A DNA stretch of 64,000 nucleotides from Chara braunii (Eukaryota; Plantae; Charophyceae): the NCBI GenBank assembly GCA_003427395.1, contig BFEA01000017.1:3539838-3603837 (forward strand), given 5' to 3'. A program made the translations under genes and the position numbers. The notes below the pieces were generated by a model. That model had not been told where the DNA came from. It saw nothing but the letters and a program-made list of their open reading frames with translations, and did not search any database. How positions within the stretch are numbered: the first letter of the stretch is position 1; each line of letters begins with the position of its first letter. Positions 1 to 48,386 of this stretch are shown here, piece by piece.

Positions 1-3000
1 TTCTACCCTCTTTAAAATCATGTAGCTTATATAAAAGCGAGAACCAAATATCGCCTAAGATTGCAAAAAATCAGGTAAGCTTGATATAGCATGATTTGTA
101 ATCTACTACACGTGTGTTGGATCTTTGTAGGTAGCTATCTATTTCCGACACAACCAACGTAGTACAAGTTGCATCAAGGATAAAATAATATCCCCAAGCT
201 TGCCACTGAACTGCCTTCCTCCATCGACGACTTCTACCACCTCCGAAATTTTGTATCTAATATAAGAAGAAAATTGAGGTGTCTCCTGGAAAAATAGAAC
301 GCCAAATAAGCTATCATAGTTTAGCTAACTAGAGATTAAAGAAAATCGTGGCACAAACACTATAGGAGGCCATGCCACAACAACAAAGCCTAACCTCGGC
401 ATCCATGAACAACTCCTAGCGGCCCTCATACTAAACACAATATACCAGAGATGATATTTTATGATAAAAAACCCCAATGGTTGTCGTGATCTCCCTGCCA
501 AGACAATACATATCCCCGTAGGTTGTCATGGCATCCCACCTTGAGTTCGCTACTGGATTGCCATCCTTCCTCGACATGTCTCCAAATCTCTCTACCAGAC
601 CTCACGCTCCTGCTGCAAACAGGTTACATGGCTACACTCCAGCACCGGCCAACGTCGTTCTAGCATCAGTAAACCAAGATCACAGAACACAACTGCTTTG
701 ATGACGTCAACCCAGATTCTACCCTTTTTAAAATCATGTAGCTTATATAAAAGGAAAAACTAGATGTCGCTTAGGATTGCAAGAAATCAGGTACGCTTGA
801 TATAGCATGATTAGCTACATCATTAGTAATATACTAATATACTACACGTGCCCTGGATCAGCTATCTATCTTTTTGTACATCAAGGGGTAGAAAAATCTA
901 TTTTAGCATCGACAAACCATGAGTGCAAAACATCAGAGTCTTGCACGGCTTCGGACCGACTTCTACCACATCTAAAATTTTGTATCTAATATGAGAAGAA
1001 AACTGAGGTGTCTCCTGGAAAAATAGAGCGTTAAATAAGCTATCATAGTTTAGCTAATTACAGATTAAAAAAAATTGAGGCACAAACACTATAAGAGGCT
1101 ATGCCACAACAACAAAGCCTTACCTCGACATCCATGAATAACTCCTAGCCGCCCTCATACTAAACACAACATACCAGAGACAATATTTCCTAACCAAAAC
1201 CAGCAATGGTTGTCGTGATATCACTTTCAAGACGATATATATCCCCTTAGGTTGTCATGGCAGCCCCCCTCAGTTCGTCACTGGATTGCCATCCTCCCTC
1301 GACATATCCCCAAATCTCTCTACAAGGCCTCACGCTCCTGCTGCAAACAGGTCACAGGGATACACTCCAACACCGGCCAACATCGTTCTAGCATCAGGAA
1401 ACCAATAGCAAAGAACACAACTGCTTGATGACGTCACCCTCTTTAAAATCATGTAGCTTATATAAAAGGGAAAACCAAATGTTACCTAGGATTGCAAAAA
1501 ATGAGGTAAGCTTGATATAGCACGATTAGTAATATACTACACGTGCCCTGGATAAGCTATCTGTCTCCCAGACCCCCAACGTAGTACAAGTTACGTCAAG
1601 GTTTTAAAAAATCTATTTTAGCATCGGCAAACCAAGAACATAAAATATCACAACTTTGCACGACTTCGGACCGACTTCTACCACCTGTGAAATTTTGTAT
1701 CTAATATAAGAAGAAACTTGAGGTGTCTCCTGGAAAAATAGAACGCCGAATAAGCTATCATAATTCAGCTAATTTGAGATTAAAGAAAATCGTGGCACAA
1801 ACACTATAGGAGGCTATGCCACAACAACAAAGCCTAACCTCGACATCCATGAACAACTCATAGCCGCCCTCATACTAAACACAACATACCAGAGACGATA
1901 TTTCCTAACCAAAACCAGCAATGGTTGTCGTGATCTCCCTGCCAAGACGATACCCATCCTCTGAGGTTGTCATGGCTGGCCCCCCCCGGTTCGCCACTAG
2001 ATTGTCATCCTCCCTCAACATATCCCCAAATCTCTCTACCAGGTCTCACGCTCCTGCTGCAAACAGGTGACAGGGCTACACCTCAGCACCAGCCAACGTT
2101 GTTCCAGCATCAGTAAACCAAGAGCAGAAAACATAACTGCTTTGATGACATCAACCCAGATTCTACCCTCTTTAAAATCATGTTCATTATATAAAATTGA
2201 AAACCAAATATCGCCTAGGATTGCAAAAAAACAGGTAAGCTTGATATAGCATGATTAGTAATATACTACACGTGCCCTGGATCGGCTATTTGCCTCTCAG
2301 ACACCCAATGTAGTACAAGTTACATCAAGGGTTTGAAAAATATTTTTCAGCATCGGCAAACCAAGAGCACAAAACATCACAGATTTGCGCAGCTTCGGAC
2401 CGACTTCTAACACCTATGAAATTTTGTATTTAACATAAGAAGAAAATTGAGGTGTCTCCTGAAAAAATAGAACTCCAAATAAGTTATCATAGTTCAGCTA
2501 ATTAGAGATTAAAGAAAATCGTGGCACAAACATTATAGAAGGCTATGCCACAACAGCAAAGCCTAACCTCGACATCCATGAACAACTCCTAACCACCCTC
2601 ATACTTAACACAACATACCAGAGACGATATTTCCTAACCAAAACTAACAATGGTTATCGTGATCTCCCTGCCAAGACGATACCTATCCTCCTAGGTTGTC
2701 ATGGCGGCCCCCCCCCAAGTTCGTGACTAGATTGCCATCCTCCCTCGACATGTCGCCAAATCTCTCTACCAAGTCTCACGCTCCTCCTGCAAACAGGTCA
2801 CATGGCTACACTCAAGCACCGGCCAACGTCATTCTAGCATCAGTAAACCAAGAGCACATAACACAACAGTTACTGCTTTGATAACGTCAGCTTGGATTCT
2901 ACCCTCTTTAAAATCATGTAGCTTATATAAAAGGGAAAACCAGATGTCGCCTATGATTGCAAAAAATCAGGTAAGATTGATAGAGCATGATTAGTAATGT

Positions 3001-3830
3001 ACTACATGTGAGTTGGATCCTTGAAGACAACTATCTGTCCTCCAGACACCCAATGTAGTATAGGTTTTATCAAGGGTTAGAAATTTCTCTTTTAACATCG
3101 GCAGACCAAGAGCACAAAACATCACAACTTTGAACGGTTTTGGACCAACTTCCACCATCTCTGAAACTTCGTATCTAACATAACAAAAAAATCGAGGTAT
3201 CTCCTGGGAAGATTGAACGCCAAATAAGCTATCATAGTTCAACTAATTAGAAATTAAAGAAAATCGTGGCACAAACACTATAGGAGGCTATGCCACAACA
3301 GCAAAGCCTAACCTCGGTATCCATGAATAACACCTAGCTGCCCTCATACTAAACACAACATACCATAGACGATATTTCCTAACTAAAACCAGCAATGGTT
3401 GTCGTGATCTCCCTGTCAAGATGATACCTATCCCCTTAGATTGTCATGGCAACCCCCTTCCCCAGTTCGCCACTGGATCGCCATCCTCCCTCGACATATC
3501 CCCAGATCTCTCAACTAGGCCTCACACTCCTGCTGCAAAAAGGTCACAGAGTTACACTCTGGCACAAACCAACGTCGTTCTAGCATTAGTAAACCAAGAG
3601 CACATAACACAACTGCTTTGATGACATCAACCCGAATTCTACCCTCTTTAAAATCATGTAGCTTATATAAAAGGGAAAACAAGATGTCGCCTAGGATTGC
3701 AAAAAATCAGGTAAGCTTGATATAGCATGATTAGTAATATACTATACGTGAGTTGGATCTTTGAAGACAACCATCTGTCTCCTAGACACCCAGCGTAGTA
3801 CAGGTTACATCAAGGGTTAGAAAAATCCCC
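1..3830 (-). repeat. Tandem array of a ~720-740 bp unit (about 5.2 copies), the internal repeat of non-coding retroposon copy A; array runs off the window start
   Basis: Marker ttctaccctctttaaaatcatgtagc recurs at ~1, 717, 1436, 2161, 2897 and 3637. The reverse complement of the unit matches 18940-19140, 19500-19700 and 53100-53220. Confidence 0.9.
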
Positions 3831-5197
3831 CTTCTCNCCCCCCCCCCCCCCTCCTTCCCCCACCTACCCCAACGTTGCCTCCTCCGAAATGGATTGCCCC
3901 GAGACCTTTTTTTCCCCCCTCCATCTTATAAAGGCATATAGTTCCCACTCAAAGTATGCCTTTGTGTCCTATATAGCCCTAATATGCCACCGTTGGGATG
4001 TGTACCCACACCGCTGCCCTAAAATAGGACAACCACTTAATTCTGCCCTCATCCCCTTCAAGGCTTCACCTCCCCCTTGTGTCACCCCTGGAGAGTGAAA
4101 CTCTCCATTGCTACCTCAAATCTCCGTCGGAAAAAACATTGACGCCCAAGGAGGAGGAAACAGATTAATAATAGAAAGAACTATAAAGTGGAGAAATTTA
4201 CTAGATAAATTAGGTATCCATATAATAACAATTAAAGTCATACTTGAATACTATGAAAAATGCAGTGAAAATTCCAAAAGAAAATCAGACATGAAACGCC
4301 TGTGACCAGATTGAAAGAACTAGGGAATAATAAAGGATACAACAATCAATGACTAATTAATTATGAATTTTTGAAATATCATATAGGTCAATTTAATGCG
4401 AAATCCAAGATTCAAAGATAGACATGATCGAGAATATACTCAGATGTTAGTTGAGATGTTAATCAAATATGATATTATTCGGATGTTAGTTGAGATATTA
4501 ATTAAACATGGTGATTATGATGACTATGATGATAACTGAATTGGTTTTTAAAATTACGATTGAGTGATTGTATTATGACAAATTAAAAAGTAGATAGGAA
4601 AGAAAATCCCGAGTAGATAGCAAGTTACTTGAGAAAGAAACTTGATGAAAATAACTAGATTACAAAGGATTGAAATATGTGAGGAATCCTCCCTACCCCC
4701 ACCCCTTTTATCCCTATTCTCTCTTCCCCCCTATACCCCACGCTTCTCTCCCATTATCCCCCTCCTTTACCCTCTTTGTACCCCTTCCTTTCCCCCACCC
4801 CTCCCCCCGCTACTTCATCTGTTTAAGCCTCCGATCATGTGGATTGGCGTTTTTTTGACACTTGTCTCACTAAAATGAATTTTGGTCCTAACATACATCA
4901 TTGGGTAAATATCTTACACTTCAATGTCACAACGAGAGTATAAGTGAATGGTTTTTTATCTCTGAAGATCCATCTTCAACGATCGGTCAGACAAGGAGAC
5001 CCTTTGACCCCCTTTCTGATTCTAATCATTATGGAGGCACGAAGGGCTAATCTTCGGTCTAGTTACAAATCTCTGGTATTCCAAAAGAAGCTATACCCAT
5101 TAGTTCGATATTTGCAGATGACATAACTATAATGTTGGAAACCTTTGTATCAAATATGGAGGAGATCCGATCGTTAATGGATAGATTTCCCAAGGTC

Positions 5198-9579: not shown

Positions 9580-10766
9580 CGATCCTTGGCCTGTGATGGA
9601 TCGCCTATATACAAACATGCTTCCGCCAAGAAGCGGAACTCTACCAAAGAAAAGAAAACCTGAGTAGTCTAGGATGCGGAGCAAGCTCCATGCTGAGTCC
9701 ATGCGATGCAACCTAGGATATAAAATGTCACAAAACANCAATGTCACAGCTAACAGCCTAAGTGAAAGTAGAAGCAACTAACTAACATAGATGTCCTAGG
9801 AAAGCAAAAGCAACTAACTAGCATACATGTNNNNNNNNNNNNNNNNNNNNNNNNNNNNNNNNNNNNNNNNNNNNNNNNNNNNNNNNNNNNNNNNNNNNNN
9901 NNNNNNNNNNNNNNNNNNNNNNNNNNNNNNNNNNNNNNNNNNNNNNNNNNNNNNNNNNNNNNNNNNNNNNNNNNNNNNNNNNNNNNNNNNNNNNNNNNNN
10001 NNNNNNNNNNNNNNNNNNNNNNNNNNNNNNNNNNNNNNNNNNNNNNNNNNNNNNNNNNNNNNNNNNNNNNNNNNNNNNNNNNNNNNNNNNNNNNNNNNNN
10101 NNNNNNNNNNNNNNNNNNNNNNNNNNNNNNNNNNNNNNNNNNNNNNNNNNNNNNNNNNNNNNNNNNNNNNNNNNNNNNNNNNNNNNNNNNNNNNNNNNNN
10201 NNNNNNNNNNNNNNNNNNNNNNNNNNNNNNNNNNNNNNNNNNNNNNNNNNNNNNNNNNNNNNNNNNNNNNNNNNNNNNNNNNNNNNNNNNNNNNNNNNNN
10301 NNNNNNNNNNNNNNNNNNNNNNNNNNNNNNNNNNNNNNNNNNNNNNNNNNNNNNNNNNNNNNNNNNNNNNNNNNNNNNNNNNNNNNNNNNNNNNNNNNNN
10401 NNNNNNNNNNNNNNNNNNNNNNNNNNNNNNNNNNNNNNNNNNNNNNNNNNNNNNNNNNNNNNNNNNNNNNNNNNNNNNNNNNNNNNNNNNNNNNNNNNNN
10501 NNNNNNNNNNNNNNNNNNNNNNNNNNNNNNNNNNNNNNNNNNNNNNNNNNNNNNNNNNNNNNNNNNNNNNNNNNNNNNNNNNNNNNNNNNNNNNNNNNNN
10601 NNNNNNNNNNNNNNNNNNNNNNNNNNNNNNNNNNNNNNNNNNNNNNNNNNNNNNNNNNNNNNNNNNNNNNNNNNNNNNNNNNNNNNNNNNNNNNNNNNNN
10701 NNNNNNNNNNNNNNNNNNNNNNNNNNNNNNNNNNNNNNNNNNNNNNNNNNNNNNNNNNNNNNNNNN

Positions 10767-12273
10767 CACGACGAGCACGGTCATAGGCACTCACCAACAT
10801 GCGAGCGTGCTGCAAGTGCTCGAGGGGCTCCCAGGTAGCCTCCTCATCAGGGTAACCCTTCCAACGTACGAGATACTCGACGTGGGGAGGGTTGTCGTCG
10901 GTGACTCGGCGACCAATGATGTCTGAAACGAGGAACTCCTCGTGGTCGTCCACCATGAGGGGTGGAGGGCGCTCGTATGGTCGTCCAGTGAAACGCTCAG
11001 ACGGTCTGCGGTAAGGACGTAGTAACGAGACGTGGTAGACATGATGCACACGAGCCTGGCGTAGGTAGTTGGGCAACTTCACACGAAAGTTGACCGGGCT
11101 AGATGTCGTATCAGAACCGACGGCCTGGAGGATGCGGCATGGGCCAAAGAAGCGACGCCGAAACTTGCGAAGCGTGTCCGCTTCGATCTGTAAGTGGCGG
11201 GTGTCAATAAGCACATCTTCACCGACTTTGACTGGATGGTCCATCCTCGATCGGTTCGCACGTGCTGCCATGCGAGTCTGGGAAGCGGCTATGTGCTCAT
11301 GTGCGGTCTTCATGATCGACGTCATGTGTGCAACCCAATCATCCAGCGGGGGACAACTCGTGTCGGTGTGCATCTGTGACGGTCGAAGAAAGTCTGCGGG
11401 AACACGAGGGTGATAGCCGAGGTCGCAATAGTAAGATGACATCCCCGTGGCTGGCGAGACGGCGTGGTTGTAGGCTATCTCCGCGTGGGCAAGATGGAGG
11501 TCCCACTGCTGGTCGTCACGAACAATCATTCGGAGAGTATCTCCGAAAGTCCTGTTCGTGATCTCGGTCTGACCATCAGTCTGAGGATGGTAAGACGACG
11601 AGAAGCGGAGCTGAGTGCCGTACACCTCGCGGAGCCGTCGCCAGAATTGGCTGGTAAAGCGCGGATCACGGTCAGATATGATGCTCAGAGGTAAGCCGTG
11701 GTCACGCACAACTCGGTCAAATACGATGCCGGCGACCTCACGTGCACTGATGGCATAGCGGCACGGAACAAAGCGTGCACGCTTTGTGAAGCGGTCGACA
11801 ACGACCAGAATAGCATCATGACCGTGGGGGGTCGGAGGTCGAAGAGGACCGATACAGTCCATCGAGATGGACTGCCAACGACCCTCAGGGATAGGAAGAG
11901 GCTGGAGCAAACCATAAGGTAGGTGGTTCGCACTGTTCATCTCCTGACAGGTGGGATACTCTGCGACGTAGTCCTTCACAAAGTCCTTGCGCTTCGGCCA
12001 GACGTACAGGCGGCTCACACGAGCCAACGTCTTGTGGAAGCCCATATGACCGGCGGCTGCCTGGTCATGGAACTCTGCTACTGCTCGGACACGTAGCTGT
12101 CCAGTGGAGGGAACGCAAATACGGGGCTCTCTGGTGCCCTGTGAAACGTGCCAGTACATGGGACCGTTGTCCCCGAGAGAGTAGTTCGGGACGGTCTTGC
12201 TGCTCCGAAGGGTCGCGTGGATGTCGCGATAGTCGGGGCAGTGGCGGTACTGAGTGCGAAACTCGTCGATCAC
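10767..12273 (-). CDS. Gypsy integrase (HHCC partly decayed, DDE core, GPY/F) plus C-terminal chromodomain
   Basis: HD..GHMG, WQSISMD, IISDRDPRFTS, QTDGQTE, FFGP, EFLVSDII..EYLVRWKGYPDEEATWEP. Confidence 0.9.
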
Positions 12274-12379
12274 CGAGTGGTGGACGGTGGTGACCGAGAT
12301 GAAAGAGAGTTGGATCTGCTCCTGGTCGTGGTCAGGGCGCCGGGATAGGGCATCTGCGACCCGATTAGTCTCACCCTTG

Positions 12380-13691
12380 ATGTGCTCAGTGGTGAAACTA
12401 AACTTGGATAGTTCGCGCCACCAGCGAGCCTGCCGAGAGGTGAGCTTCGGCTTAGTCAGAAAAGCCTAGAGTTGTCCGTGCGCATCGTGAATGGTGCCCC
12501 GTGCAGGTAGTGCCGCTAGTGCCGAGCGGCATAAACTACTGCGAGAACCTCACGTTCATCAGCAGTGTAGTTTATCTCGGTGGGCAGGAGCTGACGGGAG
12601 TAGAAGGCTATCGGACAATCACCTAAGCGAGACTCGATAGTGCCGTCCTCGGCGATGGTAGAAGAATAGTCAATAGAGGGCTCGTCAGTAGAGATGGGAG
12701 CCATGGAGATAGAGGGAGGATATGGCTCCAGAGGGATGAGCTCGGCGTCGGGACAGGGTGGATCATAGTGTAAGAGATCCGTCACGTCCACCATAAAGAA
12801 GGNGACGTCGTCCTGTNGAATGAAGTGAGNGAACTNCCGAGGCGAGGTGACAGTGATAGAGGGAGATGGTGTGGGCACTGAAGGCTCCGGGGGAGGAGGA
12901 TCGGGGCGTGGTGTCGCCGTGGTACCTATGAAAGGTACGCGATACGTCTCTCCACACTTCGTTTTGAGAACGAGAGTGTTGGTCGCCCAATCGGCCTCGG
13001 TGCTGCGGAACCGACGAGACCACGGAGTGCCGAGAATGAAGTCGTACCCCGTCTCCATCACATTGAAATGTGCAGAGGAGCGGTGGCGACGAGACGTCGG
13101 GGAACGATCAATTGGCTCGAGAGTGAGGAAGAAGGGGAGGTCGGTGACCGTCTGATCGAAGAAGCGCTGAGTCTTGTCATCCCCTAGAGTAACGGAGATG
13201 GGAGTCGGAGACCCTGTCATGGGTAAGCGGGCTTCCTTCACCACACGTGGGTGAATGAAGTCGCCCTGAGAACCGGAATCCCACAACGCTGAGTACACCC
13301 TCGTGGAGGTCCCAAGTCGTACGGGGATGATCGGGAGGGTGCGATCAGGGTCAGAGAGGATGGCGAGAAGGCGACGCAGTGCATCGACATGCAGGGTGAG
13401 TCGCTCCTGACGAGCCTGGAGCATGCTCAAGTCCAGAAGAGAGGACACAACGTCCTTGCGAGTAGCAAGCTGCTCGCTGCAACGGGCTGAGCGAATGGCT
13501 CGACGCGTCGGTAGTCGCGGCGGGGAAGGAGGGGAGACGGTGGTCTGCGGAGGCGCAGACGGTACTGCGACAGAGGGCTGAGAACACTCTGTCGAGTCCT
13601 GCGATACCTCAACTCCAGTAGCGAGAGGGGCGAACCGCGACAGAGATGTCGGGAAGCCCACTACTGAGGAGGGCGCAGGTGTACACTGCAC
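12380..13691 (-). pseudogene. Aspartic protease fused directly to the RNase H C-terminal part (RT missing)
   Basis: ALWDSGSQGDFI..DFILGTPW, then PIAFYSRQLLPTEINYTADEREVLAVVYAARH*RHYL. No YxDD region between them. Confidence 0.85.
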
Positions 13692-13696
13692 CGTGG

Positions 13697-15756
13697 CTAG
13701 GAGGCGCCGGGGGGGGACTGAGCACGGCGCTGACGAGAAAGGTCAGCGTAGTGGTGTTCGAGGGCGGTGGTGTAAGGGCACCGCGAGGAGGTATGACCGT
13801 CCAAGCGGCAGCGCAAACACCCACGCCGGCCTAGAATAGCCGCGCGCTCCTCAGGGGAAAGGACACCACGAGGAGGGACGAAGCCCTGAGGGAGGTCCTC
13901 CTGAGGGACCTCGGGGGGCGACGTGCCAGCGTGACCGGGGCGGCTGCGTGCTCGAGAGAGGGCAGAGAGCGCGAGCTGAAGGCGCTCAGCTGCAGGGAGG
14001 GTAGAGTCCTCCAAGTGATAGTGGACGGCCTCGCAGAGATCGAGGTCGTAGCTGTGGTCGCCCTCAGGTGACAGTGGGGCAACAGCGTCCTGCTCACCAT
14101 ACTCCAGCGCGTTGAAGCGGCGCGAGAAGTGGCGGCCCTGCTGCGTGGAACGGCGGGGGCGACCGCGGAACAGGGAACGGCGCTGGGAAGTGCCGTGAGA
14201 GGAGGAGGAGGCGTAGCCCGTGCGCTGGGGTTGGGAGGAGGAGGCGGGGTGAAGACGGGTTCGCATCCGCTGATGGTCCCTGGCGGCCTCGTAAGCCTGT
14301 GGGGCCGATGTGAACTCGTACCGCCATAGCTCGGAGCGGTACTCGAGCGGAAGGCTGACCAAGAAACGATCGATAAGGGCAGCCTCGGGGAGGAACGCCA
14401 CGTCGCAAACGAGGCGGGCGTCCTGAAAGACCTGGATGTGGCGATCCAGGCCAGCAGCGCCACCAAAGTCGGACCAGCGTGTAGTGACGACACGCACGAA
14501 GGCGTCAGTCACGTCGTATCGGGCTCCGAAGCGATCCTCGAGGAACACCTGGAAATCCACGAAGGTCGGAGTCCGATCCTCACGAAGGGAGTAGGCATAG
14601 AAATCCTCCCAGGCCTCGAAAGGACCGCCATGCAGGCACGTGGAGAGGTGACCCACCCACGTCTCGGGTGTGGCACCCATGAGCTGGAGTGTGCGGTGGC
14701 AGACTGCAGCCACCGAGACACGCGTATGCCTGTACCGTCATACAAGGCGATGTCCGACAAGCGGATGAGTGGTGCGCCACCGTTTTGGCGGCGAGGGGAT
14801 CGAGGAGCGGAGGCCTGTGCCACGGCTGAGTAAGTCGGCGCAGGTCCTGGGGAAAGGGGCGCAGCCGACTGTGCGCCCGGGCCACATGGGGGAGCGGCGG
14901 TGGCAACAGCGGCAGGTTGCGAGGGTGCTGCGGTAGAAGAGGTTGCAGCAACCGCGGGAGTAGGAAGAAGGTAGGAAGGAGTTGTATATGGTGCAGGGCG
15001 CGGAAAGCGAGCCTGCATGGGAGGAAGGGTAGAGGAGGCAGGGGATGCGGCCGAAGGCGCGGCCACCTGTGAGGGTGGGGGGTGGCTGAAGTCGTAAGAG
15101 GGCGAGGTCGGCCCGGAGCTGGGCAATCTCGTCCGCGAGACCCCGAACGTAGGTCGATCGAGGGGTGGCAGGAGGAAGAGTGGAGGGGGTGGACGCACAA
15201 GCAGTGGGGGCATCCCCGAGGGGGAAGAGCCAGGTGGCGCTGCGGTCGTGCGAAGGGGAGGGAGAAGCGGGGCACCCGGAAAAACTGAGACCATGGTAGC
15301 GGGTTGTTGTACCGTGGCCGTAGCGACCGGGATCTGTGCGGGTGCGCCCGTAGACTGAGGGGGGGCGTGGCTCGTGGCGGCCGTCGTGCTAGGGGCGTGG
15401 ACAGTCACCAAGATGGTCGGGTCAGGGGCAACGGAGGAGGAAGCTCCGCCGTGGCCACCCTGTCGGAGGACGGGGGACTCGGACTGGGATCCAGGAGATG
15501 ACGGACACGCAGCGTCCTGGAGTTGCTGCATGCCGGCGGCAAGGGTCACCACCTGCGCCTGTAAGAGCGCGAGGGCCGCAAGTTGCGTCTGGATGGGCGC
15601 AAGGGTCGCGAGTTGTGCGTGGATGGGCGCAAGGAGGGAGGTGAGGAGGGTGTGTAGATCCCCCTGGGGCTGATGGCCCTGGTCCGCCGGCACGGGTGTG
15701 GAGCCCGATGCAGTGGTCATCGCTGTGTCGGCGGCGTGTGACGCACCGTCGGCCAT
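13697..15756 (-). pseudogene. gag (Pro/Ser-rich N-terminus, capsid, CCHC knuckle); frameshift near 14710
   Basis: LYDGTG..SRWL then ..FLEDRFG.. in overlapping ORFs. Zinc knuckle CLRCRLDGHTSSRC. Confidence 0.85.
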
Positions 15757-17691
15757 GGGAAGATGACGGNNNNNNNNNNNNNNNNNNNNNNNNNNNNNNN
15801 NNNNNNNNNNNNNNNNNNNNNNNNNNNNNNNNNNNNNNNNNNNNNNNNNNNNNNNNNNNNNNNNNNNNNNNNNNNNNNNNNNNNNNNNNNNNNNNNNNNN
15901 NNNNNNNNNNNNNNNNNNNNNNNNNNNNNNNNNNNNNNNNNNNNNNNNNNNNNNNNNNNNNNNNNNNNNNNNNNNNNNNNNNNNNNNNNNNNNNNNNNNN
16001 NNNNNNNNNNNNNNNNNNNNNNNNNNNNNNNNNNNNNNNNNNNNNNNNNNNNNNNNNNNNNNNNNNNNNNNNNNNNNNNNNNNNNNNNNNNNNNNNNNNN
16101 NNNNNNNNNNNNNNNNNNNNNNNNNNNNNNNNNNNNNNNNNNNNNNNNNNNNNNNNNNNNNNNNNNNNNNNNNNNNNNNNNNNNNNNNNNNNNNNNNNNN
16201 NNNNNNNNNNNNNNNNNNNNNNNNNNNNNNNNNNNNNNNNNNNNNNNNNNNNNNNNNNNNNNNNNNNNNNNNNNNNNNNNNNNNNNNNNNNNNNNNNNNN
16301 NNNNNNNNNNNNNNNNNNNNNNNNNNNNNNNNNNNNNNNNNNNNNNNNNNNNNNNNNNNNNNNNNNNNNNNNNNNNNNNNNNNNNNNNNNNNNNNNNNNN
16401 NNNNNNNNNNNNNNNNNNNNNNNNNNNNNNNNNNNNNNNNNNNNNNNNNNNNNNNNNNNNNNNNNNNNNNNNNNNNNNNNNNNNNNNNNNNNNNNNNNNN
16501 NNNNNNNNNNNNNNNNNNNNNNNNNNNNNNNNNNNNNNNNNNNNNNNNNNNNNNNNNNNNNNNNNNNNNNNNNNNNNNNNNNNNNNNNNNNNNNNNNNNN
16601 NNNNNNNNNNNNNNNNNNNNNNNNNNNNNNNNNNNNNNNNNNNNNNNNNNNNNNNNNNNNNNNNNNNNNNNNNNNNNNNNNNNNNNNNNNNNNNNNNNNN
16701 NNNNNNNNNAGGTAGTTGGGGGAGAGGAGGGATGGGGAAAGGTGGACAGGGATCAAGAAAGAAGGAGAAAGAAGGAAAGAAAAGAAGAGATGAAAAAAAT
16801 AGAGTAAAAGAATGGGTGGTGGGAGAAAGGTGGGGTGAGGAAGATGAAAGGAGGAGAGAAAAGATGCAGTGGAAGGTGGGGGAAAGAGAAGGGGTGAGTA
16901 AGAGGAGAGTGGGTTAGTAGAGGGAGAGGGGAGAAGGGAGTGATACCTGGCCCTTGGTGTCTCCAAGGGCACAAGGTACACCAAGACCAGGAGGGTCTTG
17001 GTCTTTGCTGCAGCAGCCAGTTGGAGGAGAGAGGGAGGGGGCTGAGATCTTGATCAGCCCCCAGCAACACTTCTGCAGATGTCCAGATGTAGGGTCTGTT
17101 GTGTGAGCAGACCCTCTCCACTGTAGAGCAGCCCCCTAAGCAGGGTGGTCTTCAGTCCCACCACAGGCTGCCACGTGGCCGTGGAGATGGCCACGTGCAC
17201 AGGCAGCAGCAGCCGCAAAGGGGGGGGGGGGGGGGGTAAATAGCAACTTCGCTGCTGGGGGGAGGGTAAATAGCCAGCACGGGACCTCTTCAACACGAGT
17301 GTGCTGTGCTTCAAAGCCATGGACACACTGTGGCGAGTGTGTTATGAGGTTGCTTACGCACGTGCATGGCTCAGCAGATGCCTGGGTTCAAACCTTAGTG
17401 GCAGCAGTTGGATCTCGGATTTTGATAATATAAAATTCGGGAGCGGAGCGGGGCAGCGGGGCAACATGGGCGCGCGCGCACATGCCTTGGCCTTGGCGCT
17501 CGCGCGCACGTGTCGTGATGCAGCTTCCTTTTTCGCCACGTGGAGCGCACGCGTCGTGATGCAACACCTTTCTTCGTTGTTTTTTCCCACTTTTTCGGCC
17601 GAAAACGTTCGGAAAGCAGCCAAAAACCCGACTGTCGGGTTTTGCCGTATTTCCCTGCTGTGCGGTGTGGTGGGTGGGGGCGGGGACCGTT

Positions 17692-18011: not shown

Positions 18012-20025
18012 GATCTTTATTGTCATCATTATCGTCATTGTCATCGCCGTCGTAATCATCATCATCATCACCATCATCACCATCATCTTCATCATCATCA
18101 TTGAGGTAAAGTGGCTATAGGAGGACAGGCTGGATCTTCATTGACATCGTTATCATCATTGTTATCGCCGTCGTCATCATCATAATCATCATCATCATCA
18201 TCTTCATTTTCATTATTTTTGAAGTAAGTTTGTTATTGTGCTTCTAATAATCAAATTGACCACTAATTTCATCATCTCAGTATCATCCCATTTACGAACC
18301 TAACTACTTTTCTATAACTAATATCTTAACTAAAGTCTCAAACACTCCTGATCTTTCTTCTCTTCGAAACCTCAATTTCTTGTCTAACTAACATAAATGG
18401 TATTTTTATATACCTAAAATTCCAGGTGAAGATCTCTAATTAATGTTTTTTTTTTTTTTTTAATCACGTTTATCTACTCTCAAGTCCTACTATCAATAAC
18501 TTAGTCATAAATTATTTGACTATTTGACTAACTCTTTCCTTATATGGAAGAGACATAAATGTTCCTTCCTACATTCGTAATTTTATCTGACATTTCATAA
18601 AAATAGGTTGAATTTGTGGTAAGGGATGGGGAGAGCCCTGCTCTGCAGGGGTTTCATTAGGAGGGGGGTGAAACCCTGGAGGGGGCACGGGCAGATTGTG
18701 AGGAATACTCTATTATGGGGTTGGGCTTTAAATCCCAGCGGGGGCAGACTAGGGTGAAGGGATAGACAGGGGAATGGAGGGAATGGAGGAAGGCAGGGAA
18801 AATTTTTCGAATCTTCTCATTATAATCATATTCATAATCATCATCATCATTATCATCATCCATGTTATATCATGCTTACTGGTGCTCGGTAATTCTTGGT
18901 GGCATCTGGCTTCCTTCCTCATTCGGGATATAGGATCTTAGAGATGGTCGAATCTAGGCCGATATCTACAGAGTTGCCTTGTTCCGGGCCCCTGGCTTTG
19001 CCGATGCCGAGCTGGGGCGTTGCCCTGTAATCTGCAATTGGCAGGAGTGTGCGGCCTTGTAGAGAGATCTGGGGATTTGCTGAGGGAGGAAGGCAATCCA
19101 GTGGCGAACCGGGGGGGCTGCCTTGACAACCTATGGGGTCAGGGATAATCTAGGTGGCGAGAACAGGTCAGCTACCGTTGACATTGGTAAGGAGGGTATT
19201 GTCTCTGAGATGTAATGTCTTGGTACAGGGAGGGCTAGGAGGTGTTCTAGGATTAGGAGGTCAGAAGTGCTGATAAAGCATAGTTTTCTACTTTTTCTAC
19301 ATACTAATCATCATCATCATCATCATCATCATTGTCTCAATCATGTTAAAAAAATAAAATAAAATAAAATCATCATAATCATCATCATCATCATCATCAT
19401 CATTAGTATCATCATCTCAATATGTTATATTAAGCTTTTTGGTGTTCTAAAATTTTTGGCAGCATCTAGACTTCTTCCACAATCGGGATATAGGATTTCA
19501 GAGATGGTTGAACCTGGACTGGTGTCTACAGAGTTGCTCTGTTCTGAGCCCCTGGTTTGCCGATGCCAGAACGACGCTGGCCGGAGCTGGGGCGTTGCCC
19601 TGTAACCTGCAAATGGCAGGAGTGTGAGGCCTTGTAGAGAAATCTGGGGTTTGCTGAGGGAGGAAGGCAATCCAATGGTGAACAGGGGGGGCAAAGGGAG
19701 CGAGAAGAGAACAGCCATGGTAGACGTTGGTTAGGTTGGTACTGTCTCTAAGTCACAATGTCCTGGTATAGGGAGGGCTAGGAGTTGTTCTAAGATTAGG
19801 AGGTCAGAATTGATGATATAGCATAGTCTCCTTTTTGCACTTATCTTCATTATCATTAGCATCATCATCAGCAGTATCACTATCATCATCATGATCATTA
19901 TCATCACCATATGAGGGACGCTGAGCCCGGTTCTCAGCAAGTTCGGTTCGGTTACTCCGGGCAGAATGTGAGGACCCCGGCCTCAATCTTCTTATTGGTA
20001 ATATCAGCCTTGGGCACTGGGCCCA

Positions 20026-20077
<52 letters not shown>

Positions 20078-20082
20078 AAAAA

Positions 20083-20085
<3 letters not shown>
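18012..20085 (+). mobile_element. 3' part of non-coding poly(A) retroposon copy B (2 internal units, terminal stem-loop, poly(A)); its 5' part may lie left of the gypsy insertion (~8070-9258)
   Basis: Units at ~18880-19300 and ~19430-19850 are homologous to array 1-3830. gggacGCTGAG-cccggtt-CTCAGC at 19915-19938. Poly(A) at 20028-20085. Confidence 0.7.
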
Positions 20086-20086
<1 letters not shown>

Positions 20087-20124
<38 letters not shown>

Positions 20125-20700: not shown

Positions 20701-21166
20701 ACCACCACCATCAGATCATTTGTGATCTGATGGCTGGGAAGCACTCTGCTGTGATTTCAGGTGGGAGGTCTCTGTTTCTTTTTTTTTTTTTTGCCTTCCT
20801 CCTGTTTTCTCACCCCAGAAATTCGTAATGAACCTGTCATCCCCCTGCCACTCCGTGTCACACTGGATCGGCCAAACTCCTATCCGACTGCTAATGGGAC
20901 CACACCCCTGCTGCTTCCCTTTGTGGTTACCTTGAGAAAATGTGCCCGCATCTTTGTTTATAGTACTTTATACTTGCCAATGATGTATCAGGGTGACAGG
21001 GACCATGATGGAAAAAAAAAAAGAAAAAAAAAAAGATGGAGCCAGTTTCCAGCAGGTGTTGCTCCCCACCAACAGATGGAGCCTTTTATATCACCTTGGT
21101 AAGTGGCCGCCTCAGCCGCCTGCGTAGAGGTCCTCTCCCTTCCCCCCCCCCCNACCCCCCCACACA

Positions 21167-21204: not shown

Positions 21205-22121
21205 TTTCCTTGGAACAAAAAAGGATAACAGATTTTGATCCGGATTGGCTAGCCTGGGGGAAAAGGGCAGAAGATAGCATCAGTTGCTGAGAACAATCAT
21301 TTGGAGAGACGGGAAGCAAAATGAGAAGAACTCCAATTGGAAACACCTCAATTGGCGTACTATTCTTCCCCTTTTACTAAAGAATACCGTGTGGTGAGCA
21401 CACTAAGCAGCTTACGCAAATTTTTCACAGGTCCCTCGTTCCGTCGAGGGGCCCAAAAAGAAAAAACAAATATCAAGCTCTATCATTCAATCATTCAATC
21501 ATTGAACAAAATTGGGCTTCCTAAGAAAGCCATTATTTTTTTTCACATTTTAGTCTCCGCACGCACGATGTGCGACCATTGATGGTCCGCGGACATCCCC
21601 AGTTTGCGGTACCATCTGAATTTTCTTTACTTTAAAACCTTTTTAATTTTTATTTTGGACCCTCGGGCCTAAGATGCAATCTGGACCACAATACGTCCAG
21701 GTACATCAGATGGTGCAACGTCCTGGAGATGCTGGACCATCGATGGTCTTACTTCGTGGGGACGCAAAAATGCTAAAAAATGTGGAATCTTTTACGAAGC
21801 CCAATTTCTTTCAACAAAAAAAAACAAACTGTCAGTTTTAAATCACCATTACCTCCTAGCCTCTTTTTGGCAAGATGGAAAAAAACTGCGCACGCCACCC
21901 ATCTTGGTCCGGTAGCACAGTTCACCTGAAGAATGCGGGGCCTGGCTGCAGTACTCTCGAAATGTGCAAAACGATAGTGAATCTTCCTCTAGAATATGGA
22001 AAGATACACGGCCATGATTTTTGTCTTTTGTGGATGTCCAGAGTAGTGCAGCGAGACTCCCGTGGTGTAGACCATATAGGTGCTTCGAGTTTGCCTGTGA
22101 AAGGTAGCGGTGGCTTAAAGT

Positions 22122-23631: not shown

Positions 23632-24273
23632 GGCCTCCAGTATGATCTTATGAAGAAAAGGAAACAGGATTGAGGGGGTCTATCAGGTATATGATGACGG
23701 GGTCTACCCATGCATGGCTTCGCTCTAGGGTAGGGTACTAGGGATATAAGTCGCTCCGGTGAGTCTGAGTTCCGCCTAGCCCTGGATAACTTGAAGTTAG
23801 GGGAAGGACGGTCGGATGTGTCCGTGGGGCGCCGGATTGCCTTGCTTAGGTACTCCTGCTGGGTAGACTCTCCGAATTATTGGGACTGTAGAAGATTGCA
23901 TGAGCCTGGCGTCCGAAGTGCCCGTACTGCAAGGTTCGTCCGCTTCCGCTTTCACTAGGGCTGGGGGGTTGGCCCAGCCTTGGTGCTTGTCACTGCAGCT
24001 GTCTGTTCCAAGTTGCCCTCCATACTGGTAGGGTGATGGTCCTGAGTGCTGGTCACACTGAGGTAGGATAGTAGGGACCGGGTGCGCTGGCTGGGAGTAA
24101 TAACTTGGGGATGGGTGGGGTAGGTGGCCTAGTATCCTGTCAGGACAACTATTGGCTGCCGCTGCCAGCAATCACGGAGGGTCAGGTCCTTGGCCTTTAC
24201 AACACCCTGGGCTTTAAAAACAAAAAAAAAGAGAAACAAAAAAGAGAGAGAAAAAAAAAGAAGAGAGGATCTT

Positions 24274-24371
24274 AGCTACTTTGGGACATCCGTTACAATT
24301 GGAATGATACAGAGAATATTATCATGGGCCCTGCACAAGGATGACACACATGAATCGAGAAACAGTCCAAA
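24274..24371 (+). pseudogene. U6: U6 snRNA retropseudogene (diverged, near full length)
   Basis: gggacatccgttacaattggaatgatacagagaatattatcatgggccctgcacaaggatgacacacatgaatcgagaaacagtccaaa aligns to plant U6 including the ACAGAGA box. No USE/TATA seen upstream. Confidence 0.9.
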
Positions 24372-24372
24372 G

Positions 24373-25403
24373 CCTCGGAAGCCTTTGTGCAGCGAAGTTC
24401 TTGTGGATACCAGAAGCCTCGGAAGACCAGGGCTTTATGTCTAAGGTGGCCTAGGATACCGTAGCCACCCCCAAATTGACGGGGGCTCTCGGGATTCTGG
24501 ACCCAAAGCAACAAAATCTGGCCTTATTAGCCAAGTGGCCCATCTTGGCAATGCTGGATACCTCTCAAAAGGCCTGGACCAGATTCGCCCAGTATCTCCT
24601 TGGCTCAGACTGGAAACTGGCCAATCATGATGACGTTTGGCTCTGTCTATGTCTCCCGTCCTTCTCTCAGCGTCGGCCGAAGTTGGTACTGTGGCGCCAG
24701 ATTTTGTATGCTTGGAACAGGTTACGCCCTCCCATTGTTAGGGAGCCAGTTACACGCCTGTCAGAAATCCTCAATCAACTGCTCTTCGAGAACCCTCGGA
24801 TTCTTCAACAGGATGGCGAAGTATTCTCGGCTGCTCCATCATCGAGGGAACTTCCTTCGCTAGTCGTTGAAATAGTGGCGCCTTCTTTCTACTATCGATT
24901 TTCTTCCTGCCGACGGTTCTTGGAGAGGGTTAGCGTTATGCGATTTTGCTCAAGCGTTGCATGGCTTCGGTCACCCTTTCACATTCCGAAAGGGCGGAGC
25001 AGATTCAGAAGGGTATGTTGGTGATGGAAATGCTCTGGTTCGTTCAGACAACGAATGTCACTTATTTGCCGGGGAGGGGTTTTCGCCCTTGGGATGGGGT
25101 GCGTGAATAATCCTGTCAGGTTGGTTGGTTCGGCTTGTTTTTCACCATTTTCCGTCTTCTCAAAGGAGCCCCAATTCGCAAGACCTCTATCTCAGCGGTG
25201 GTCATCGAACCGCCAGATTGAGGTCTTGACTGTCAGGCTGCTCCATCAATTGGTGGGGAGCAATACCTGCTGGAAACCGGGTCCAGCGTCCCTGAACAAC
25301 ATTGTCGTCGTACAATTTATATTCGGAACCATCGGTTGGTACGGCTTGTAATTGTGCCGATTGTGGATACCTATTTTTTGGAGCGAATAAAAGTTTCTCA
25401 CCT

Positions 25404-25447: not shown

Positions 25448-26321
25448 TTGGCAAAACTTCGTGTACTTCGCCTCAGTGACTTGTGGAACGAGACTGGGAA
25501 CTGTTGGCTCACTGTGGACTCACTTCGGGCAAAATTGCCCAGGGCCCGCAATATCAGAGGAAATTTCGAGGCTCTGAAACAGGCAATGCCCGCTTCCTGG
25601 ATCCTGTGCCTTCAACCAAACAGACATCCGGGCAAAGATACTTGGTTTTCTTCTCCCTCCTGTTCGTCCATCTTCTGGCATGTGATTGCCCCCCCCCTCA
25701 CGGGGGGGTACGAAGGTACGAGTTTGGAAGCACAGCCGGAATGCCAAGACAGAGGACCACCTCAGTTTCATAGGTGAAGAATTGGCGACTCTGGATGATG
25801 AACTACAAGAAGTGAGGGTCTGGGTTTCTGAGGGCCCCAGGGGTACTAAGGAAACTTGCTCGGGGGGGTGCCCAGCCTCGTCCTTTAAAATAGATCCATA
25901 TAACTGGGGCTGGTCGGATCTGGTCAAGCCAGGGGACTTTACTCCACTCAGCCAGTATTCCATGAAAGTTGGGAGGGCCATCCAACTCAAGAAAATCCAA
26001 AAAACGCCAGACTGAGTTGATCTGGCTATCAGAAGATGGAAAGAACACCCTGCAGATCATGTCTCCGAAGCCCAGTTACGGAAATTTCGGAAACAGCTCC
26101 AGAAACTTCCAGACCAGAAGGCAGCAAGTTTGCTATCCTCTGGATGCCAGAGTAATCAATGCTGGCAGGCTTCCTCACTCTGTATGCATTCTGTATTCGT
26201 GTTGTAAAGGGACGCTGGACCCGCTTTCCAGCAGGTGATGCTCCCCACCAATAGACGGAGCCTCTCCCCAGGTGCTAGCGGTGTCTGATTTCGTCAGCAC
26301 CGCTAGCACTGCAGGGGGTTG

Positions 26322-26366
<45 letters not shown>

Positions 26367-27286
26367 ACTGTGGTTACAATCTATGCAGGCAGTTCCCTCT
26401 GCAGAGTGGCTGTCCTCCAGGGGGATGCCAGTCTCTCTGCAATGCAGCCGTTGCACGTGGGCCTGGGAAACTTCATCCCATCTATGGGTGGACTGCCCTT
26501 ATTCCTGACTGATCTGGCAATTATGGTGGAGGAAAGACTGGGCAAATCTCGGGGACTCCGTAGTCCCCTGGTCAGACTCATGGATCCGTTCAGGTTGCTC
26601 GGATGTGTGCTCTTCATTCAACTTGGGCTGGGGCTATATCGCCCAACTTCAAGTCTGCAGAGGGGTCATTATGAGGATTCTCTGGCAGAGCCGCTATGAG
26701 AAGCTCCTTACAGAGGAACCTCTTTGCCCAGAGAAGCAGAAAAGGCTTATCCTAATTCAAATCAGCCTTATTGTTATTGCAGACTGGCAAAGGAAGGGCC
26801 CTCTGTGGTTTTCTCTTACATGGGCGTGGGTCAGTCGTTTGGTGTCTGTGCAAGAAGGAAAGTTGGCGCTTTGCCCATGGTTGTGTCCGGGCCCGTATTT
26901 AGAAGACACTGCTAGTTGTTGAACTTAGAGGAAAAGAGTCGTCTTTAGACTTATTATTGTTGGGAGTTATTTGTGTTAGTGCCCTTTGTTTGGGTCACCA
27001 TTATGCTCACAAGCTAAAGTTGTAAGGCTAGAAGTGGCCACCTCTCTCAGAGTATAGTGGTCTTGAGTTTTGACTGTTTGGAAGATGAACTGGACACGCA
27101 GAAAGGAATGGACGCTGGACCCGGTTTCCAGTATATATATTTTGGAAACGGTTTCCAGTATATGCCTAAGCTGGGTATGGCCCCCAGAAACTCCCGGTTG
27201 TTTGTGAGGGATTCCCGAGTCGGACCTCCTCTCATTTCACATTCAAAGTTTAAATTTTTCCCAAAAAAAAAAAAAAAAAAAAAAAA
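24373..27286 (+). mobile_element. 5'-truncated L1/Tx1-type LINE inserted at the U6 3' end, with two nested poly(A) insertions (24854-25443, 26132-26360)
   Basis: KFLW..SKVA*DTV..GALGILDPKQQNLALLAKW, QLLFENP, LSDLW and DPYNWGW match ORF2 of the 28-36 kb LINE. Poly(A) at 27263-27289. TSD aaac(a/g)gtccaaag at 24360-24372 and 27287-27299. Nested TSDs aactt and aagttt. Confidence 0.85.
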
Positions 27287-27674
27287 AAACGGTCCAAAGG
27301 AAAAATGAAAGAAAAAAAAAGGGACTTTTTTATTAAAAAAAGAAAAAAAGGGATCTTCCAAACCGGCTCAAACCAATAAAAAAGGCCTGACAAAAAATAA
27401 TAATAAAATAAATAAATACATAAAAAAGGCCTGAAAGGCTGTCCTGTCCAGATCTGACAGGTAATTGAATTGGCTGGGATTAGCCACAAAAAAGAAAAAG
27501 AAAAAAAAAAAAAAAAGCAAATAACAACAACCACAACAACAACTACACCCACAACAACCACTTGACGGAGGTATCCGCCTTTCACTGTGAGAGGCAGCTA
27601 TGCTTGCCAGCGCAGGGGTCCCATACCTACATGGCCTACCTTCTTCCCTCGAATCGGACGTAGGGTTGTTTAAC

Positions 27675-36160: not shown

Positions 36161-37264
36161 CTAGAAGGAGGACAGGCCGGTCAGCTTCCTCAGTTGTTCA
36201 TAGGAGCACCAGAAGACGAATTGCCAGGGACCAAGTCGGGCCCAGGTGGGAAAAAACCCCTTCCACAGGGCGAGGACGCCCTCGGATCGGACGGTCTTCA
36301 AGAGGCAGTCCAGTGAGCTGCTGTACTGAGTACTCGAAAGCAGCGTGGCCCCGCTGACTCTGAGACCCCCTGCCACGTGCCCTGCTCGATTGCCTGCCAC
36401 GTGTCCTTGATTCATCATTCTTGTCTTGACAACGTCGGCAGGGCAGCTGAGAACGGTCGCACAGAGGCCGGACATGACGCTCGCCGCTGTGTGAGCGACC
36501 ACATTGTCGTCGCACAGCTGCCTGGTGATCACAAATCGCTTGGCTTGGTCATAGCAGGCCAGCTCGCCTACGTTGACCAAGGCCGCTCTCTGAGCGTTGG
36601 GACCCACCCCCCTCCATAACCCTCTCACCCCCTCCTCTCTGTAGATGGACGCACAAGCCGTTGGAAAATTGGAGTACCTTGGGGCAACCCCAAGAGCGGC
36701 AAGGCGGCCATCGGCCTGCATGCGTACTTTGACAAGGTCAGCTGGGCTAGCAATGACCTGTCCGACGACACCTGCAAGCCCCCCGCTTGCAGCCTTGAGA
36801 AGCACAGGCACCTCCTTCTCCACTGCCGACCCCCCCATTGCTTCCCCCCCCCTTCCAGCAGCAGCTGCAGCTGCAGGTGCACCAGATTGACGAGAGCGGG
36901 AGTGGGAATGGGAGAGAGAGTCGCGGAGGTGCTCGTAGATAACGATGCGAGAGCTCGTATAGATGACATGCCGCACAAGGGCCGGGGACAGACCCCTGTA
37001 CAACCCCAAGACACCCTCTTCGCGAGCGATTGACAAGCCCGTCGCCAGGGCCCCACGATGAACCCCCCCCCCTGCTCTCCCCACACCCGTTCCGGACATC
37101 GAGAGCCCCATCTCCCCCTGCAGCTGCAGCCTCGTCTTCGTGATGTCGATCGGAAACGTGGCACTTTCTGCGGCGATGGCTGCAACTGACGTCAGGCTCA
37201 ATCTCAAGGCCACCTGCTGCCGCTCCTTCTGCTGCTGCCGCTCAACGCTGCATTCCGACGCCAT
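36161..37264 (-). CDS. UCP3: Mitochondrial uncoupling protein, plant UCP3/PUMP3-like (SLC25 carrier), 367 aa, single coding exon
   Basis: Three carrier signatures (FPIDITKTRLQ, SPADLVKVRMQ, CPADVVKTRMM), GELACYDQAK and WKGFFPTWARLGPWQFVFW. ATG at 37264 follows a T-tract plus ttctcag acceptor (~37295), implying a 5'-UTR intron. Confidence 0.93.
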   Translation of the reverse strand: MASECSVERQQQKERQQVALRLSLTSVAAIAAESATFPIDITKTRLQLQGEMGLSMSGTGVGRAGGGVHRGALATGLSIAREEGVLGLYRGLSPALVRHVIYTSSRIVIYEHLRDSLSHSHSRSRQSGAPAAAAAAGRGGEAMGGSAVEKEVPVLLKAASGGLAGVVGQVIASPADLVKVRMQADGRLAALGVAPRYSNFPTACASIYREEGVRGLWRGVGPNAQRAALVNVGELACYDQAKRFVITRQLCDDNVVAHTAASVMSGLCATVLSCPADVVKTRMMNQGHVAGNRAGHVAGGLRVSGATLLSSTQYSSSLDCLLKTVRSEGVLALWKGFFPTWARLGPWQFVFWCSYEQLRKLTGLSSF

Positions 37265-37315
37265 GATGGCGATCCCGGCCTGCCTGCTCGATACCTGAGA
37301 ACTCAACGGACAGAG

Positions 37316-39190: not shown

Positions 39191-39200
39191 GGACATCCGT

Positions 39201-39232
<32 letters not shown>

Positions 39233-39328
39233 GGCCCCTGCGCATTTTTTTTTTTATTATTATTATTTTTTTTTTTGGCCCCTGCGCTTTCAAGGATGAC
39301 ACGCATAAATCGAGAAATGGTCCAAATT
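39191..39328 (+). pseudogene. U6: U6 snRNA retropseudogene lacking the first ~10 nt, with an internal T-rich insertion and a (TAA)n tail
   Basis: ggacatccgttaaaattggaacgatacagagaagattagcatggcccctgcgc...caaggatgacacgcataaatcgagaaatggtccaaatt, nearly identical to plant U6. Confidence 0.95.

Positions 39329-48344: not shown

Positions 48345-48386
<42 letters not shown>

Follow-up and report, generated by a model that had tools for sequence, protein, structure and literature searches.

Retroposons that carry the Alu domain found in signal recognition particle (SRP) RNA have been published for vertebrates only, namely for Euarchontoglires, hagfish and shrew mole (PMC7245038, PMC10886601, bioRxiv 10.1101/2024.08.25.609555). 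The 46-nt 5' Alu domain is necessary and sufficient for ORF2p-driven retrotransposition in human cells, SA46 reaching about 86% of full Alu. Placed within an RNA polymerase II transcript, Alu sequences likewise promote retrotransposition of that transcript, and SRP9/14 was found in association with the 46-nt domain (PMC12199147). The U-turn of the domain is required for SRP9/14-dependent functions (PMC12265939 and work cited there). Here, we analyze a stretch of 64,000 nt from the streptophyte alga Chara braunii (GCA_003427395.1, contig BFEA01000017.1, positions 3,539,838 to 3,603,837), termed the window in the following. It holds four non-coding retroposons, elements A to D, whose internal units repeat a small module with the likeness of an SRP Alu 5' domain. 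The original prediction, made from the letters of the window, had proposed such a domain and had stated that no such Alu-like strategy was known to be described for a plant-lineage genome. Full-text literature searches agree with this and gave none for plants or algae.

The Chara elements share with the Alu and B1 elements of Euarchontoglires (SINE1 among the short interspersed nuclear elements, SINEs) an Alu 5'-domain-like fold on the sense RNA of a poly(A)-ended, non-autonomous element and a conserved U-turn. Alu and B1, of 150-300 nt, depend on RNA polymerase III for transcription and on long interspersed nuclear elements (LINEs) for mobility, and they have their domain at the extreme 5' end, accompanied by the 3' Alu part of helix 5. 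In contrast, the Chara domain is internal, present in two to seven copies per element and without helix 5. It has an outer helix of its own, and it lies in elements of about 1 kb to more than 4 kb with a separate, unrelated head and a LINE 3' stem-loop, in a streptophyte host. Measured against SINE1, the Chara elements have the LINE-type, poly(A) 3' end, but they are not short elements with a 5' 7SL-derived polymerase III head. The hagfish element SINE1-1_EBu (PMC7245038) is similar in that an independent lineage combines an Alu-domain fold with a LINE-derived tail (of RTE type in hagfish) and fold-keeping compensatory changes. However, its 5' head is plainly 7SL-derived with the S domain deleted and is present as a single copy, whereas the Chara modules may derive from 7SL RNA. 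The closest functional match to the Chara module in size and context are SA46 and AY46 (Moldovan, Yin and Moran 2025, PMC12199147), where a 46-nt domain is placed in a polymerase II poly(A) transcript; these belong to an engineered human system with one copy at the RNA 5' end and canonical loops. Stringent-type SINE/LINE pairs also have a 3' stem-loop common to retroposon and LINE, but these SINEs usually carry tRNA- or 5S-derived heads and no Alu-like modules. The SVA elements of hominids are, like the Chara elements, kb-scale, non-coding, probably of polymerase II type with poly(A), LINE-mobilised and built of simple repeats, variable internal tandem units and Alu-related sequence. They have no sequence relation to the Chara elements, and their Alu-like part consists of antisense Alu fragments and not of a folded 5' domain in each unit.

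A repeated module in a family of non-coding retroposons

The pattern GGGGY-N3-8-RCCC-TGTAA has five matches on the plus strand of the window (19014, 19589, 47118, 47634 and 53133) and none in 100 shuffles. A covariance model termed R1 was built from ten aligned copies, using the originally proposed fold and one added helix. Applied to the window and to the further Chara locus L005, it gave 19 matches at E < 1e-4, all in sense orientation, 13 of them in the window and six in L005. All 11 copies named before are present and were recovered at this threshold, together with two window copies that had been overlooked (47008-47066 and 47520-47582). A second model, R2, was trained on all 19 Chara copies and on no other sequences; over 188 kb it revealed no further clear copy. 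The motif strand is the poly(A) strand for every copy. The observation of a repeated motif in the units of non-coding retroposons is hence confirmed.

The module-bearing family consists of the four elements of the window and a fifth one in L005. All five combine a G-rich head with spacers made of (ATC)n or other sequence, units that vary in number, a 3' tail and a poly(A) or A-rich end. They contain only short open reading frames (ORFs), the longest of 102 amino acids. A conserved antisense ORF at 19425-19718 (minus strand), searched in order to gather further genomic copies, found no match in the protein collection. Six other Chara loci were gathered via gypsy and LINE proteins, and the element is present in only one of them, L005, so that the covariation described below rests on five elements.

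In element A the head (about 18600-18800) and (ATC)n spacers are followed by two units of about 560-575 bp (18862-19420 and 19422-19900), the 3' tail and the poly(A). Its 5' end is uncertain: should the T-runs at 18446-18461 and 20087-20124 form a target-site duplication, it lies at 18462, and otherwise at about 18560. The 59-nt poly(A) of this element directly abuts the second T-run, which is 38 nt long. The T-runs could represent either a target-site duplication or a tail-to-tail placement with a minus-strand retrocopy. Target-site duplications were not found for elements C and D, and element A may sit in a T-run. The units of A and B contain a second, diverged module with UGACAA in place of UGUAA (GGGGGGGCUGCCUUGACAACCUAUGGGG), seen at 19112-19150 in A and, for example, at 3480-3440 (minus strand) in B. 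In C, D and L005, the last with seven motifs, the modules are paired at a distance of 95-140 nt in a dimer-like manner, and in D a short-H3 copy (see below) precedes a long-H3 copy.

The helices of the module are kept by compensatory changes

Read on the sense RNA, the module of 40-60 nt starts with a GACG box and the 5' strand of an outer helix P0 (mostly GGCC). After 0-3 nt follow the 5' strand of helix H2 (GCY), a G, hairpin H3 (GGGN...NCCC), the turn UGUNR, hairpin H4 (CCU.. ..AGG), the 3' strand of H2 (RGY), a NUGA linker and the 3' strand of P0. The complete copy A2 reads GACGC-UGGCC-GGA-GCU-G-GGGC-GUU-GCCC-UGUAA-CCUGC-AAAUG-GCAGG-AGU-GUGA-GGCC. Copy A1 has the core GCU-G-GGGC-GUU-GCCC-UGUAA-UCUGC-AAUUG-GCAGG-AGU and has lost the P0 5' strand by a 17-nt deletion. 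Downstream of the module come UGGUAGAGAGAU and a second hairpin with the purine loop GAGGGNGGAA. This loop has 11 matches in the window against 0.28 expected, and in subfamily C the hairpin stands on both sides of the module. H3 occurs in a short form with a loop of 3-4 nt (19011, 19586) and in a long form of 19-22 nt overall (53256 and most L005 copies). Loops had been described as free to vary, and they do so in sequence and in length, with H3 loops of either 3-4 nt or 6-11 nt depending on the copy. The minus-strand copies of element B, considered decayed before, are so in H3, which is down to 2-3 bp, but P0, H2, H4 and UGUNR are retained.

In the alignment of 19 copies, 89.8% of the paired cells hold standard pairs, compared to 41-56% when the 3' partners are slid by 1-3 columns, and 10 of the 16 pairs show changes on both sides. 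Compensatory cells number 23 against 9.6 +/- 2.5 after shuffling, a value that none of 500 shuffles reached. A non-redundant set of 13 copies, left after removal of near-duplicates and one fused hit, gave the same picture (89.9% paired; 17 compensatory cells against 6.3 +/- 2.2, reached in 0 of 2000 shuffles). By helix, 93% of the cells are paired in H2, 88% in H3 and 86% in H4, with double changes in one, two and four of their pairs, respectively. The clearest case of covariation is P0, which was absent from the original description: 93% of its cells are paired, three of its four pairs show double changes, and it occurs as GGCC/GGCC, GGUC/GACC, AGCUG/CAGCU and CGGC/GCCG. The covariation that had been named, GGGC/GCCC versus GGGU/ACCC and GCU/AGY versus GCC/GGC, is real and extends to H4 and P0. 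Thus, H2, H3, H4 and P0 are shown to be kept by compensatory changes while the loops drift.

The turn fits UGUNR in 18 of the 19 copies, the remaining one being UUUGA. It occurs as UGUAA, UGUGA, UGUCA, UGUUA and UGUGG, so that N takes all four bases and R is A or G. In the non-redundant set the three letters UGU carry 2.0, 1.6 and 2.0 bits, N carries 0.9 and R 1.6. The expectation that TGTAA is conserved beyond its flanks holds in part: UGU is among the best-kept positions, but conservation is about as high in the GACG box and the UGA linker. Readings of the motif as a Pumilio-type site (UGUANAUA) or a hammerhead were discarded since the required extra letters are absent.

Matches to SRP Alu domains in both directions

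Short motif-bearing stretches were scanned with the 4227 families of Rfam. The stretch 53110-53320 (D1 and D2) matched Metazoa_SRP positions 1-75 with 16.3 bits (E 0.018), the match lying at 53256-53320 (D2). The stretch 21020-21290 of L005 matched Metazoa_SRP 1-44 with 15.7 bits (E 0.035) and Plant_SRP 1-60 with 12.8 bits (E 0.12). For these two longer stretches SRP families are top in both score and E-value. Around A2 (19575-19640) Archaea_SRP 1-79 is best by E-value (9.5 bits, E 0.99), but an unrelated model scores higher (13.4 bits), and the stretch around C2 (47612-47682) gave no SRP match. All SRP matches are sense and start at model position 1, with H2, H3, UGUAA and H4 falling on the model's own helices. 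The H3 loop of D2, UGGC, is the metazoan SRP consensus loop. Long-H3 copies outscore short-H3 copies against the SRP models, which would fit a 7SL-like ancestor followed by shortening of H3. Taken alone, these forward matches are only suggestive.

For the reverse direction, prokaryote loci were chosen solely by a pattern of the SRP S domain (AGGYCCGGAAGGRAGCA), and the Alu end played no part in the choice. R1 gave eight matches over 578 kb of such DNA, and three of them, in one clostridial and two archaeal loci, preceded an S motif of the same strand by 145-200 nt. With filters off and 12 loci (86 kb), the top four of six R1 matches were SRP Alu 5' domains. Over the same 86 kb, the top five R2 matches were SRP Alu 5' domains of archaea and clostridia (E 0.0045-0.075), and the match in locus L031 is identical in its letters to the Rfam archaeal consensus. 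Altogether, seven of 15 R2 matches had the same strand as an S motif and preceded it by 60-260 nt. This zone takes up about 1.4% of the DNA that was searched, and a simple binomial estimate puts the chance of such a result at about 1e-9. R2 missed the SRP RNAs of three Bacillaceae loci. These matches in both search directions support that the module has the sequence and secondary-structure signature of an SRP Alu 5' domain.

A tail shared with LINEs

The tail of the retroposons contains a stem-loop, GGGAYGYUGGRCCCGGUUYCCAGCA, that is also found behind the C-terminus of a LINE ORF2 and at a further two LINE-like ends. Compensatory changes are seen in its stem, which occurs as CUGGG/CCCAG, CUGAG/CUCAG and CUGGA/UCCAG, and a conserved GCUCCCCAC...AUAGA..GGAGC lies 3' of it. 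Since this stem-loop is common to the LINE 3' untranslated region and the retroposons, the latter seem to parasitise that LINE by way of the tail, and a second hook would come from the modules. The proposed parasitism of L1 needs two corrections. The partner is placed here only as an APE-type LINE (RVT_1, zf-RVT), and the Alu-like domain would add to tail recognition instead of being the sole hook. Besides several LINE fragments truncated at the 5' end, the window contains one long LINE that matches RVT_1, zf-RVT and, weakly, an endonuclease; a LINE ORF of the window is 66% identical to CBR_g3661 (GCA_003427395.1).

Genomic depth and expression

In the contigs of one DNA run, the summed k-mer depth peaks within the A2 unit at the motif bin, with 259,000. 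The bin just upstream of it has 93,000 and the other bins of the unit mostly have 5,000-32,000. Depth is 87,000 at the A1 motif flank and 81,000-93,000 in the 3' tail. This shows that no other part of the unit is kept as widely in the genome as the motif. Where reads diverge within the H4 loop, they come together again at CAGG-AGC-GUGAGGCC, as would be expected of free loops and fixed stems. Two oligo-dT RNA sequencing (RNA-seq) runs gave reads over the motif and the tail and none over the flanks. These reads are mostly 90-95% alike with a partial fit, and few are at 99%. Expression of the element A copy itself is therefore weak at best.

Genomic setting

The window has many poly(A) runs and is a retrocopy-rich stretch of the C. 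braunii genome (Table 1). At Rfam gathering scores, it contains four small nuclear RNA (snRNA) copies (U6 twice, U2 and U5) and nothing else, and the six other Chara loci contain nothing. One U6 copy (24269-24376) abuts a LINE ORF2 fragment (24341-24826) and resembles the U6-L1 chimeric retrocopies that arise from template switching; the junction looks like a chimeric retrocopy. If real, it implies that template switching onto small RNAs occurs in the C. braunii genome, which would be a plausible route of 7SL capture. The remaining features comprise a gypsy-type long terminal repeat (LTR) retrotransposon, an ORF with three Mito_carr repeats that could be a gene or a retrogene, and the insertion that interrupts element C, which could be a DNA transposon.

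Table 1. Elements, module copies and other features (window coordinates unless L005 is named)
Feature	Position	Strand	Remarks
Element A, non-coding retroposon	18462-20086	+	2 module copies
Copy A1	19000-19061, core 19011-19048	+	R1 47.5 bits, R2 57.3 bits
Copy A2, complete	19573-19636, core 19586-19623	+	R1 80.7 bits
Second conserved hairpin, loop GAGGGAGGAAGGCA	19082-19095, repeated 19656-19669	+	about 35 nt downstream of the Alu-like module
Element A 3' tail	19905-20027	+	stem-loop GGGACGCUGAGCCCGGUUCUCAGCA at 19915-19939, common to LINE 3' ends
Element A poly(A)	20028-20086	+	
Element B	1-4120	-	head about 4120-3860, then at least 5 units of about 720 bp; runs off window start
Element B copies	3513-3576, 2767-2830, 2037-2100, 1321-1384, 593-656	-	5 modules
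Element C, diverged subfamily	46560-49960	+	interrupted by insertion at about 47780-49540; end (AAAT)n
Element C copies	47008-47066, 47103-47159, 47520-47582, 47619-47678	+	tail stem-loop 49851-49875
Element D	52580-53607	+	head, D1, D2, tail stem-loop 53522-53546, poly(A) 53583-53607
Element D copies	D1 53117-53175, D2 53243-53313	+	D1 short H3; D2 long H3, loop UGGC
GAGGGNGGAA loop sites	19082-19095, 19656-19669, 47075-47088, 47167-47180, 47591-47604, 47686-47699, 53195-53208	+	and minus-strand copies
Tail stem-loops of retroposons	19915-19939, 49851-49875, 53522-53546	+	
Tail stem-loop, L005	about 20760-20790 (L005)	-	
5'-truncated LINE	26362-27289	+	ORF2 C-terminus 26362-26859, stem-loop about 27101-27125, poly(A) 27263-27289
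Further tail stem-loop, LINE-like end	26209-26233	+	
Further tail stem-loop, LINE-like end	25268-25292	-	
U6 snRNA copies	24269-24376, 39173-39275		above Rfam gathering score; poly(A)-rich surroundings
U2 snRNA copy	41409-41571		above Rfam gathering score; poly(A)-rich surroundings
U5 snRNA copy	21332-21451		above Rfam gathering score; poly(A)-rich surroundings
Gypsy-type LTR retrotransposon, chromodomain integrase	9814-16984	-	80-90% identity to dozens of annotated C. braunii proteins
Intronless 381-amino-acid ORF, three Mito_carr repeats	36161-37306	-	E 2e-64; A-rich runs adjoin
A+T-rich insertion, 1.76 kb	about 47780-49540		G+C-rich GCGGCCGCGGCCG-type ends; interrupts element C

Discussion

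The structural part of the original interpretation stands: an SRP Alu 5'-domain signature, matched at scores below gathering by Rfam SRP models and in the reverse search by R2, is multiplied within non-coding poly(A) retroposons, and its helices covary through compensatory changes. In the module as predicted, H2 encloses H3 and H4, joined by the UGUNR turn, and the extra helix P0 closes it in place of SRP helix 5. We propose host 7SL RNA as the ancestor of the module, which a reverse transcriptase may have acquired by template switching. By analogy with human Alu, it may bind SRP9/14 and hold the RNA on ribosomes that make the LINE protein. There, the 3' stem-loop and the poly(A) would let the LINE enzyme copy the parasite RNA, and several copies of the module per RNA might raise the odds that one is folded and bound. 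We regard it as an even call that this is a family of non-coding poly(A) retroposons in which each unit has an SRP Alu 5'-domain-like module that comes from host 7SL, binds SRP9/14, docks on ribosomes and serves LINE copying. The stronger version is a tentative proposal that falls somewhat short of even. According to it, a streptophyte alga would have independently evolved the Alu strategy, with tandem minimal 7SL-derived domains in a long polymerase II-type composite retroposon that recruit SRP9/14, dock on ribosomes and outcompete the LINE RNA for the reverse transcriptase of the LINE.

Several observations weigh against this proposal. The Rfam SRP scores of 9.5-16.3 bits are far below the gathering scores of 70-105 bits, and whole-element E-value scans of A and D, like copy C2, gave no SRP match. 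The loop-loop pairs of SRP RNA, between GG in H3 and C in H4, were noted before as not obvious. They are impossible in the copies at 19011 and 19586, where an H3 loop GUU and H4 loops AAUUG and AAAUG offer no G-C partners. A partner strand for SRP helix 5 could not be established; the strands before and after H2 pair with each other as P0. A 7SL gene was found neither in the window nor in the six other Chara loci with Rfam at gathering scores, so that these provide no host sequence for comparison. A likeness of the stretch after H2 to the human 7SL helix 5 strand was considered and set aside, as few letters match there in the Rfam alignments. The alignment used for covariation was fitted to the model and comprises about 13 distinct copies from five elements. 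Minimum-free-energy folds of eleven single copies are no better than those of shuffles, and for several single copies the predicted fold differs from the three-way junction. The case for the fold hence rests on comparison and not on thermodynamics. The equal conservation of the GACG box, the UGA linker and the turn points to a constraint beyond an Alu fold. The RNA-seq reads, being mostly 90-95% alike, come from paralogues, and the RNA strand is unreadable, as one run is biased oppositely on motif and tail and the other is unbiased.

Some of these points would be equally expected if the module were a selected, folded binding site for a partner other than SRP9/14, such as the LINE ORF1 or ORF2 protein or a host factor in export, stability or packaging. 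In that case, the Alu likeness would be either partial or inherited, and ribosome docking would have ceased to depend on it. The module conserves the GACG box, the NUGA linker and P0, none of which has an equivalent in SRP RNA, the short-H3 copies are unable to form the loop-loop pairs, and the second conserved hairpin with its GAGGGNGGAA loop always stands beside the module. In addition, the elements already carry the LINE 3' stem-loop for recognition. On the other hand, UGUNR varies exactly as it does in SRP RNAs, and the searches single out SRP Alu domains both from the 4227 families and from 86 kb of prokaryotic sequence. In human cells, a minimal 5' Alu domain is enough by itself (PMC12199147). 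We therefore think that a different partner is rather unlikely, while it deserves serious attention. That the modules are a passive relic, a captured 7SL-like fragment carried along by tandem duplication and retroposition with conservation reflecting descent, appears improbable to us. Copies within an array are indeed closely related (over the motif stretch, A1 is 93% like A2, and the five B copies are very similar), the B copies were duplicated despite the loss of most of H3, and the element A copy has little or no expression. Descent, however, does not readily account for subfamily C, which is nearly unalignable to A, D and L005 outside the modules and yet keeps all helices by double changes. 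The same holds for the four different paired sequences of P0 and for a depth at the motif that is 8-50 times that of most of the rest of the unit.

Readings in which the RNA fold plays no role fare worse. The A box of 7SL and Alu lies inside the 5' domain (PMC7245038), and the modules might thus be internal RNA polymerase III promoters like the 7SL-derived head of SINE1. But they are internal and repeated in elements of 1.5-4 kb, related reads are present in oligo-dT RNA-seq, a B box was not seen, without a formal search, and the compensatory changes indicate selection on RNA pairing and not on a DNA box. This makes a promoter function very improbable. Hardly credible is a chance resemblance, in which a G+C-rich repeat would happen to contain TGTAA. 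The single-sequence folding energies would allow it, but the five pattern matches against none in shuffles, the excess of compensatory cells and the seven of 15 reciprocal matches within about 1.4% of the sequence speak against it.

The Chara copies constitute a natural mutagenesis series, with short and long H3, every N of UGUNR and four versions of P0, that is usable for SRP9/14 binding tests. If the Alu-like reading is true, the family would be a natural counterpart of the engineered 46-nt minimal domain (PMC12199147). It would also represent a plant-lineage case of independent origin and new layout, in which internal tandem minimal 5' domains are combined with a LINE 3' stem-loop. Such a case would speak for the Alu fold itself, rather than primate history, as the cause of efficient LINE parasitism, and under the stronger version ribosome docking via the SRP Alu fold would be a general and repeatedly found route to LINE parasitism across eukaryotes.

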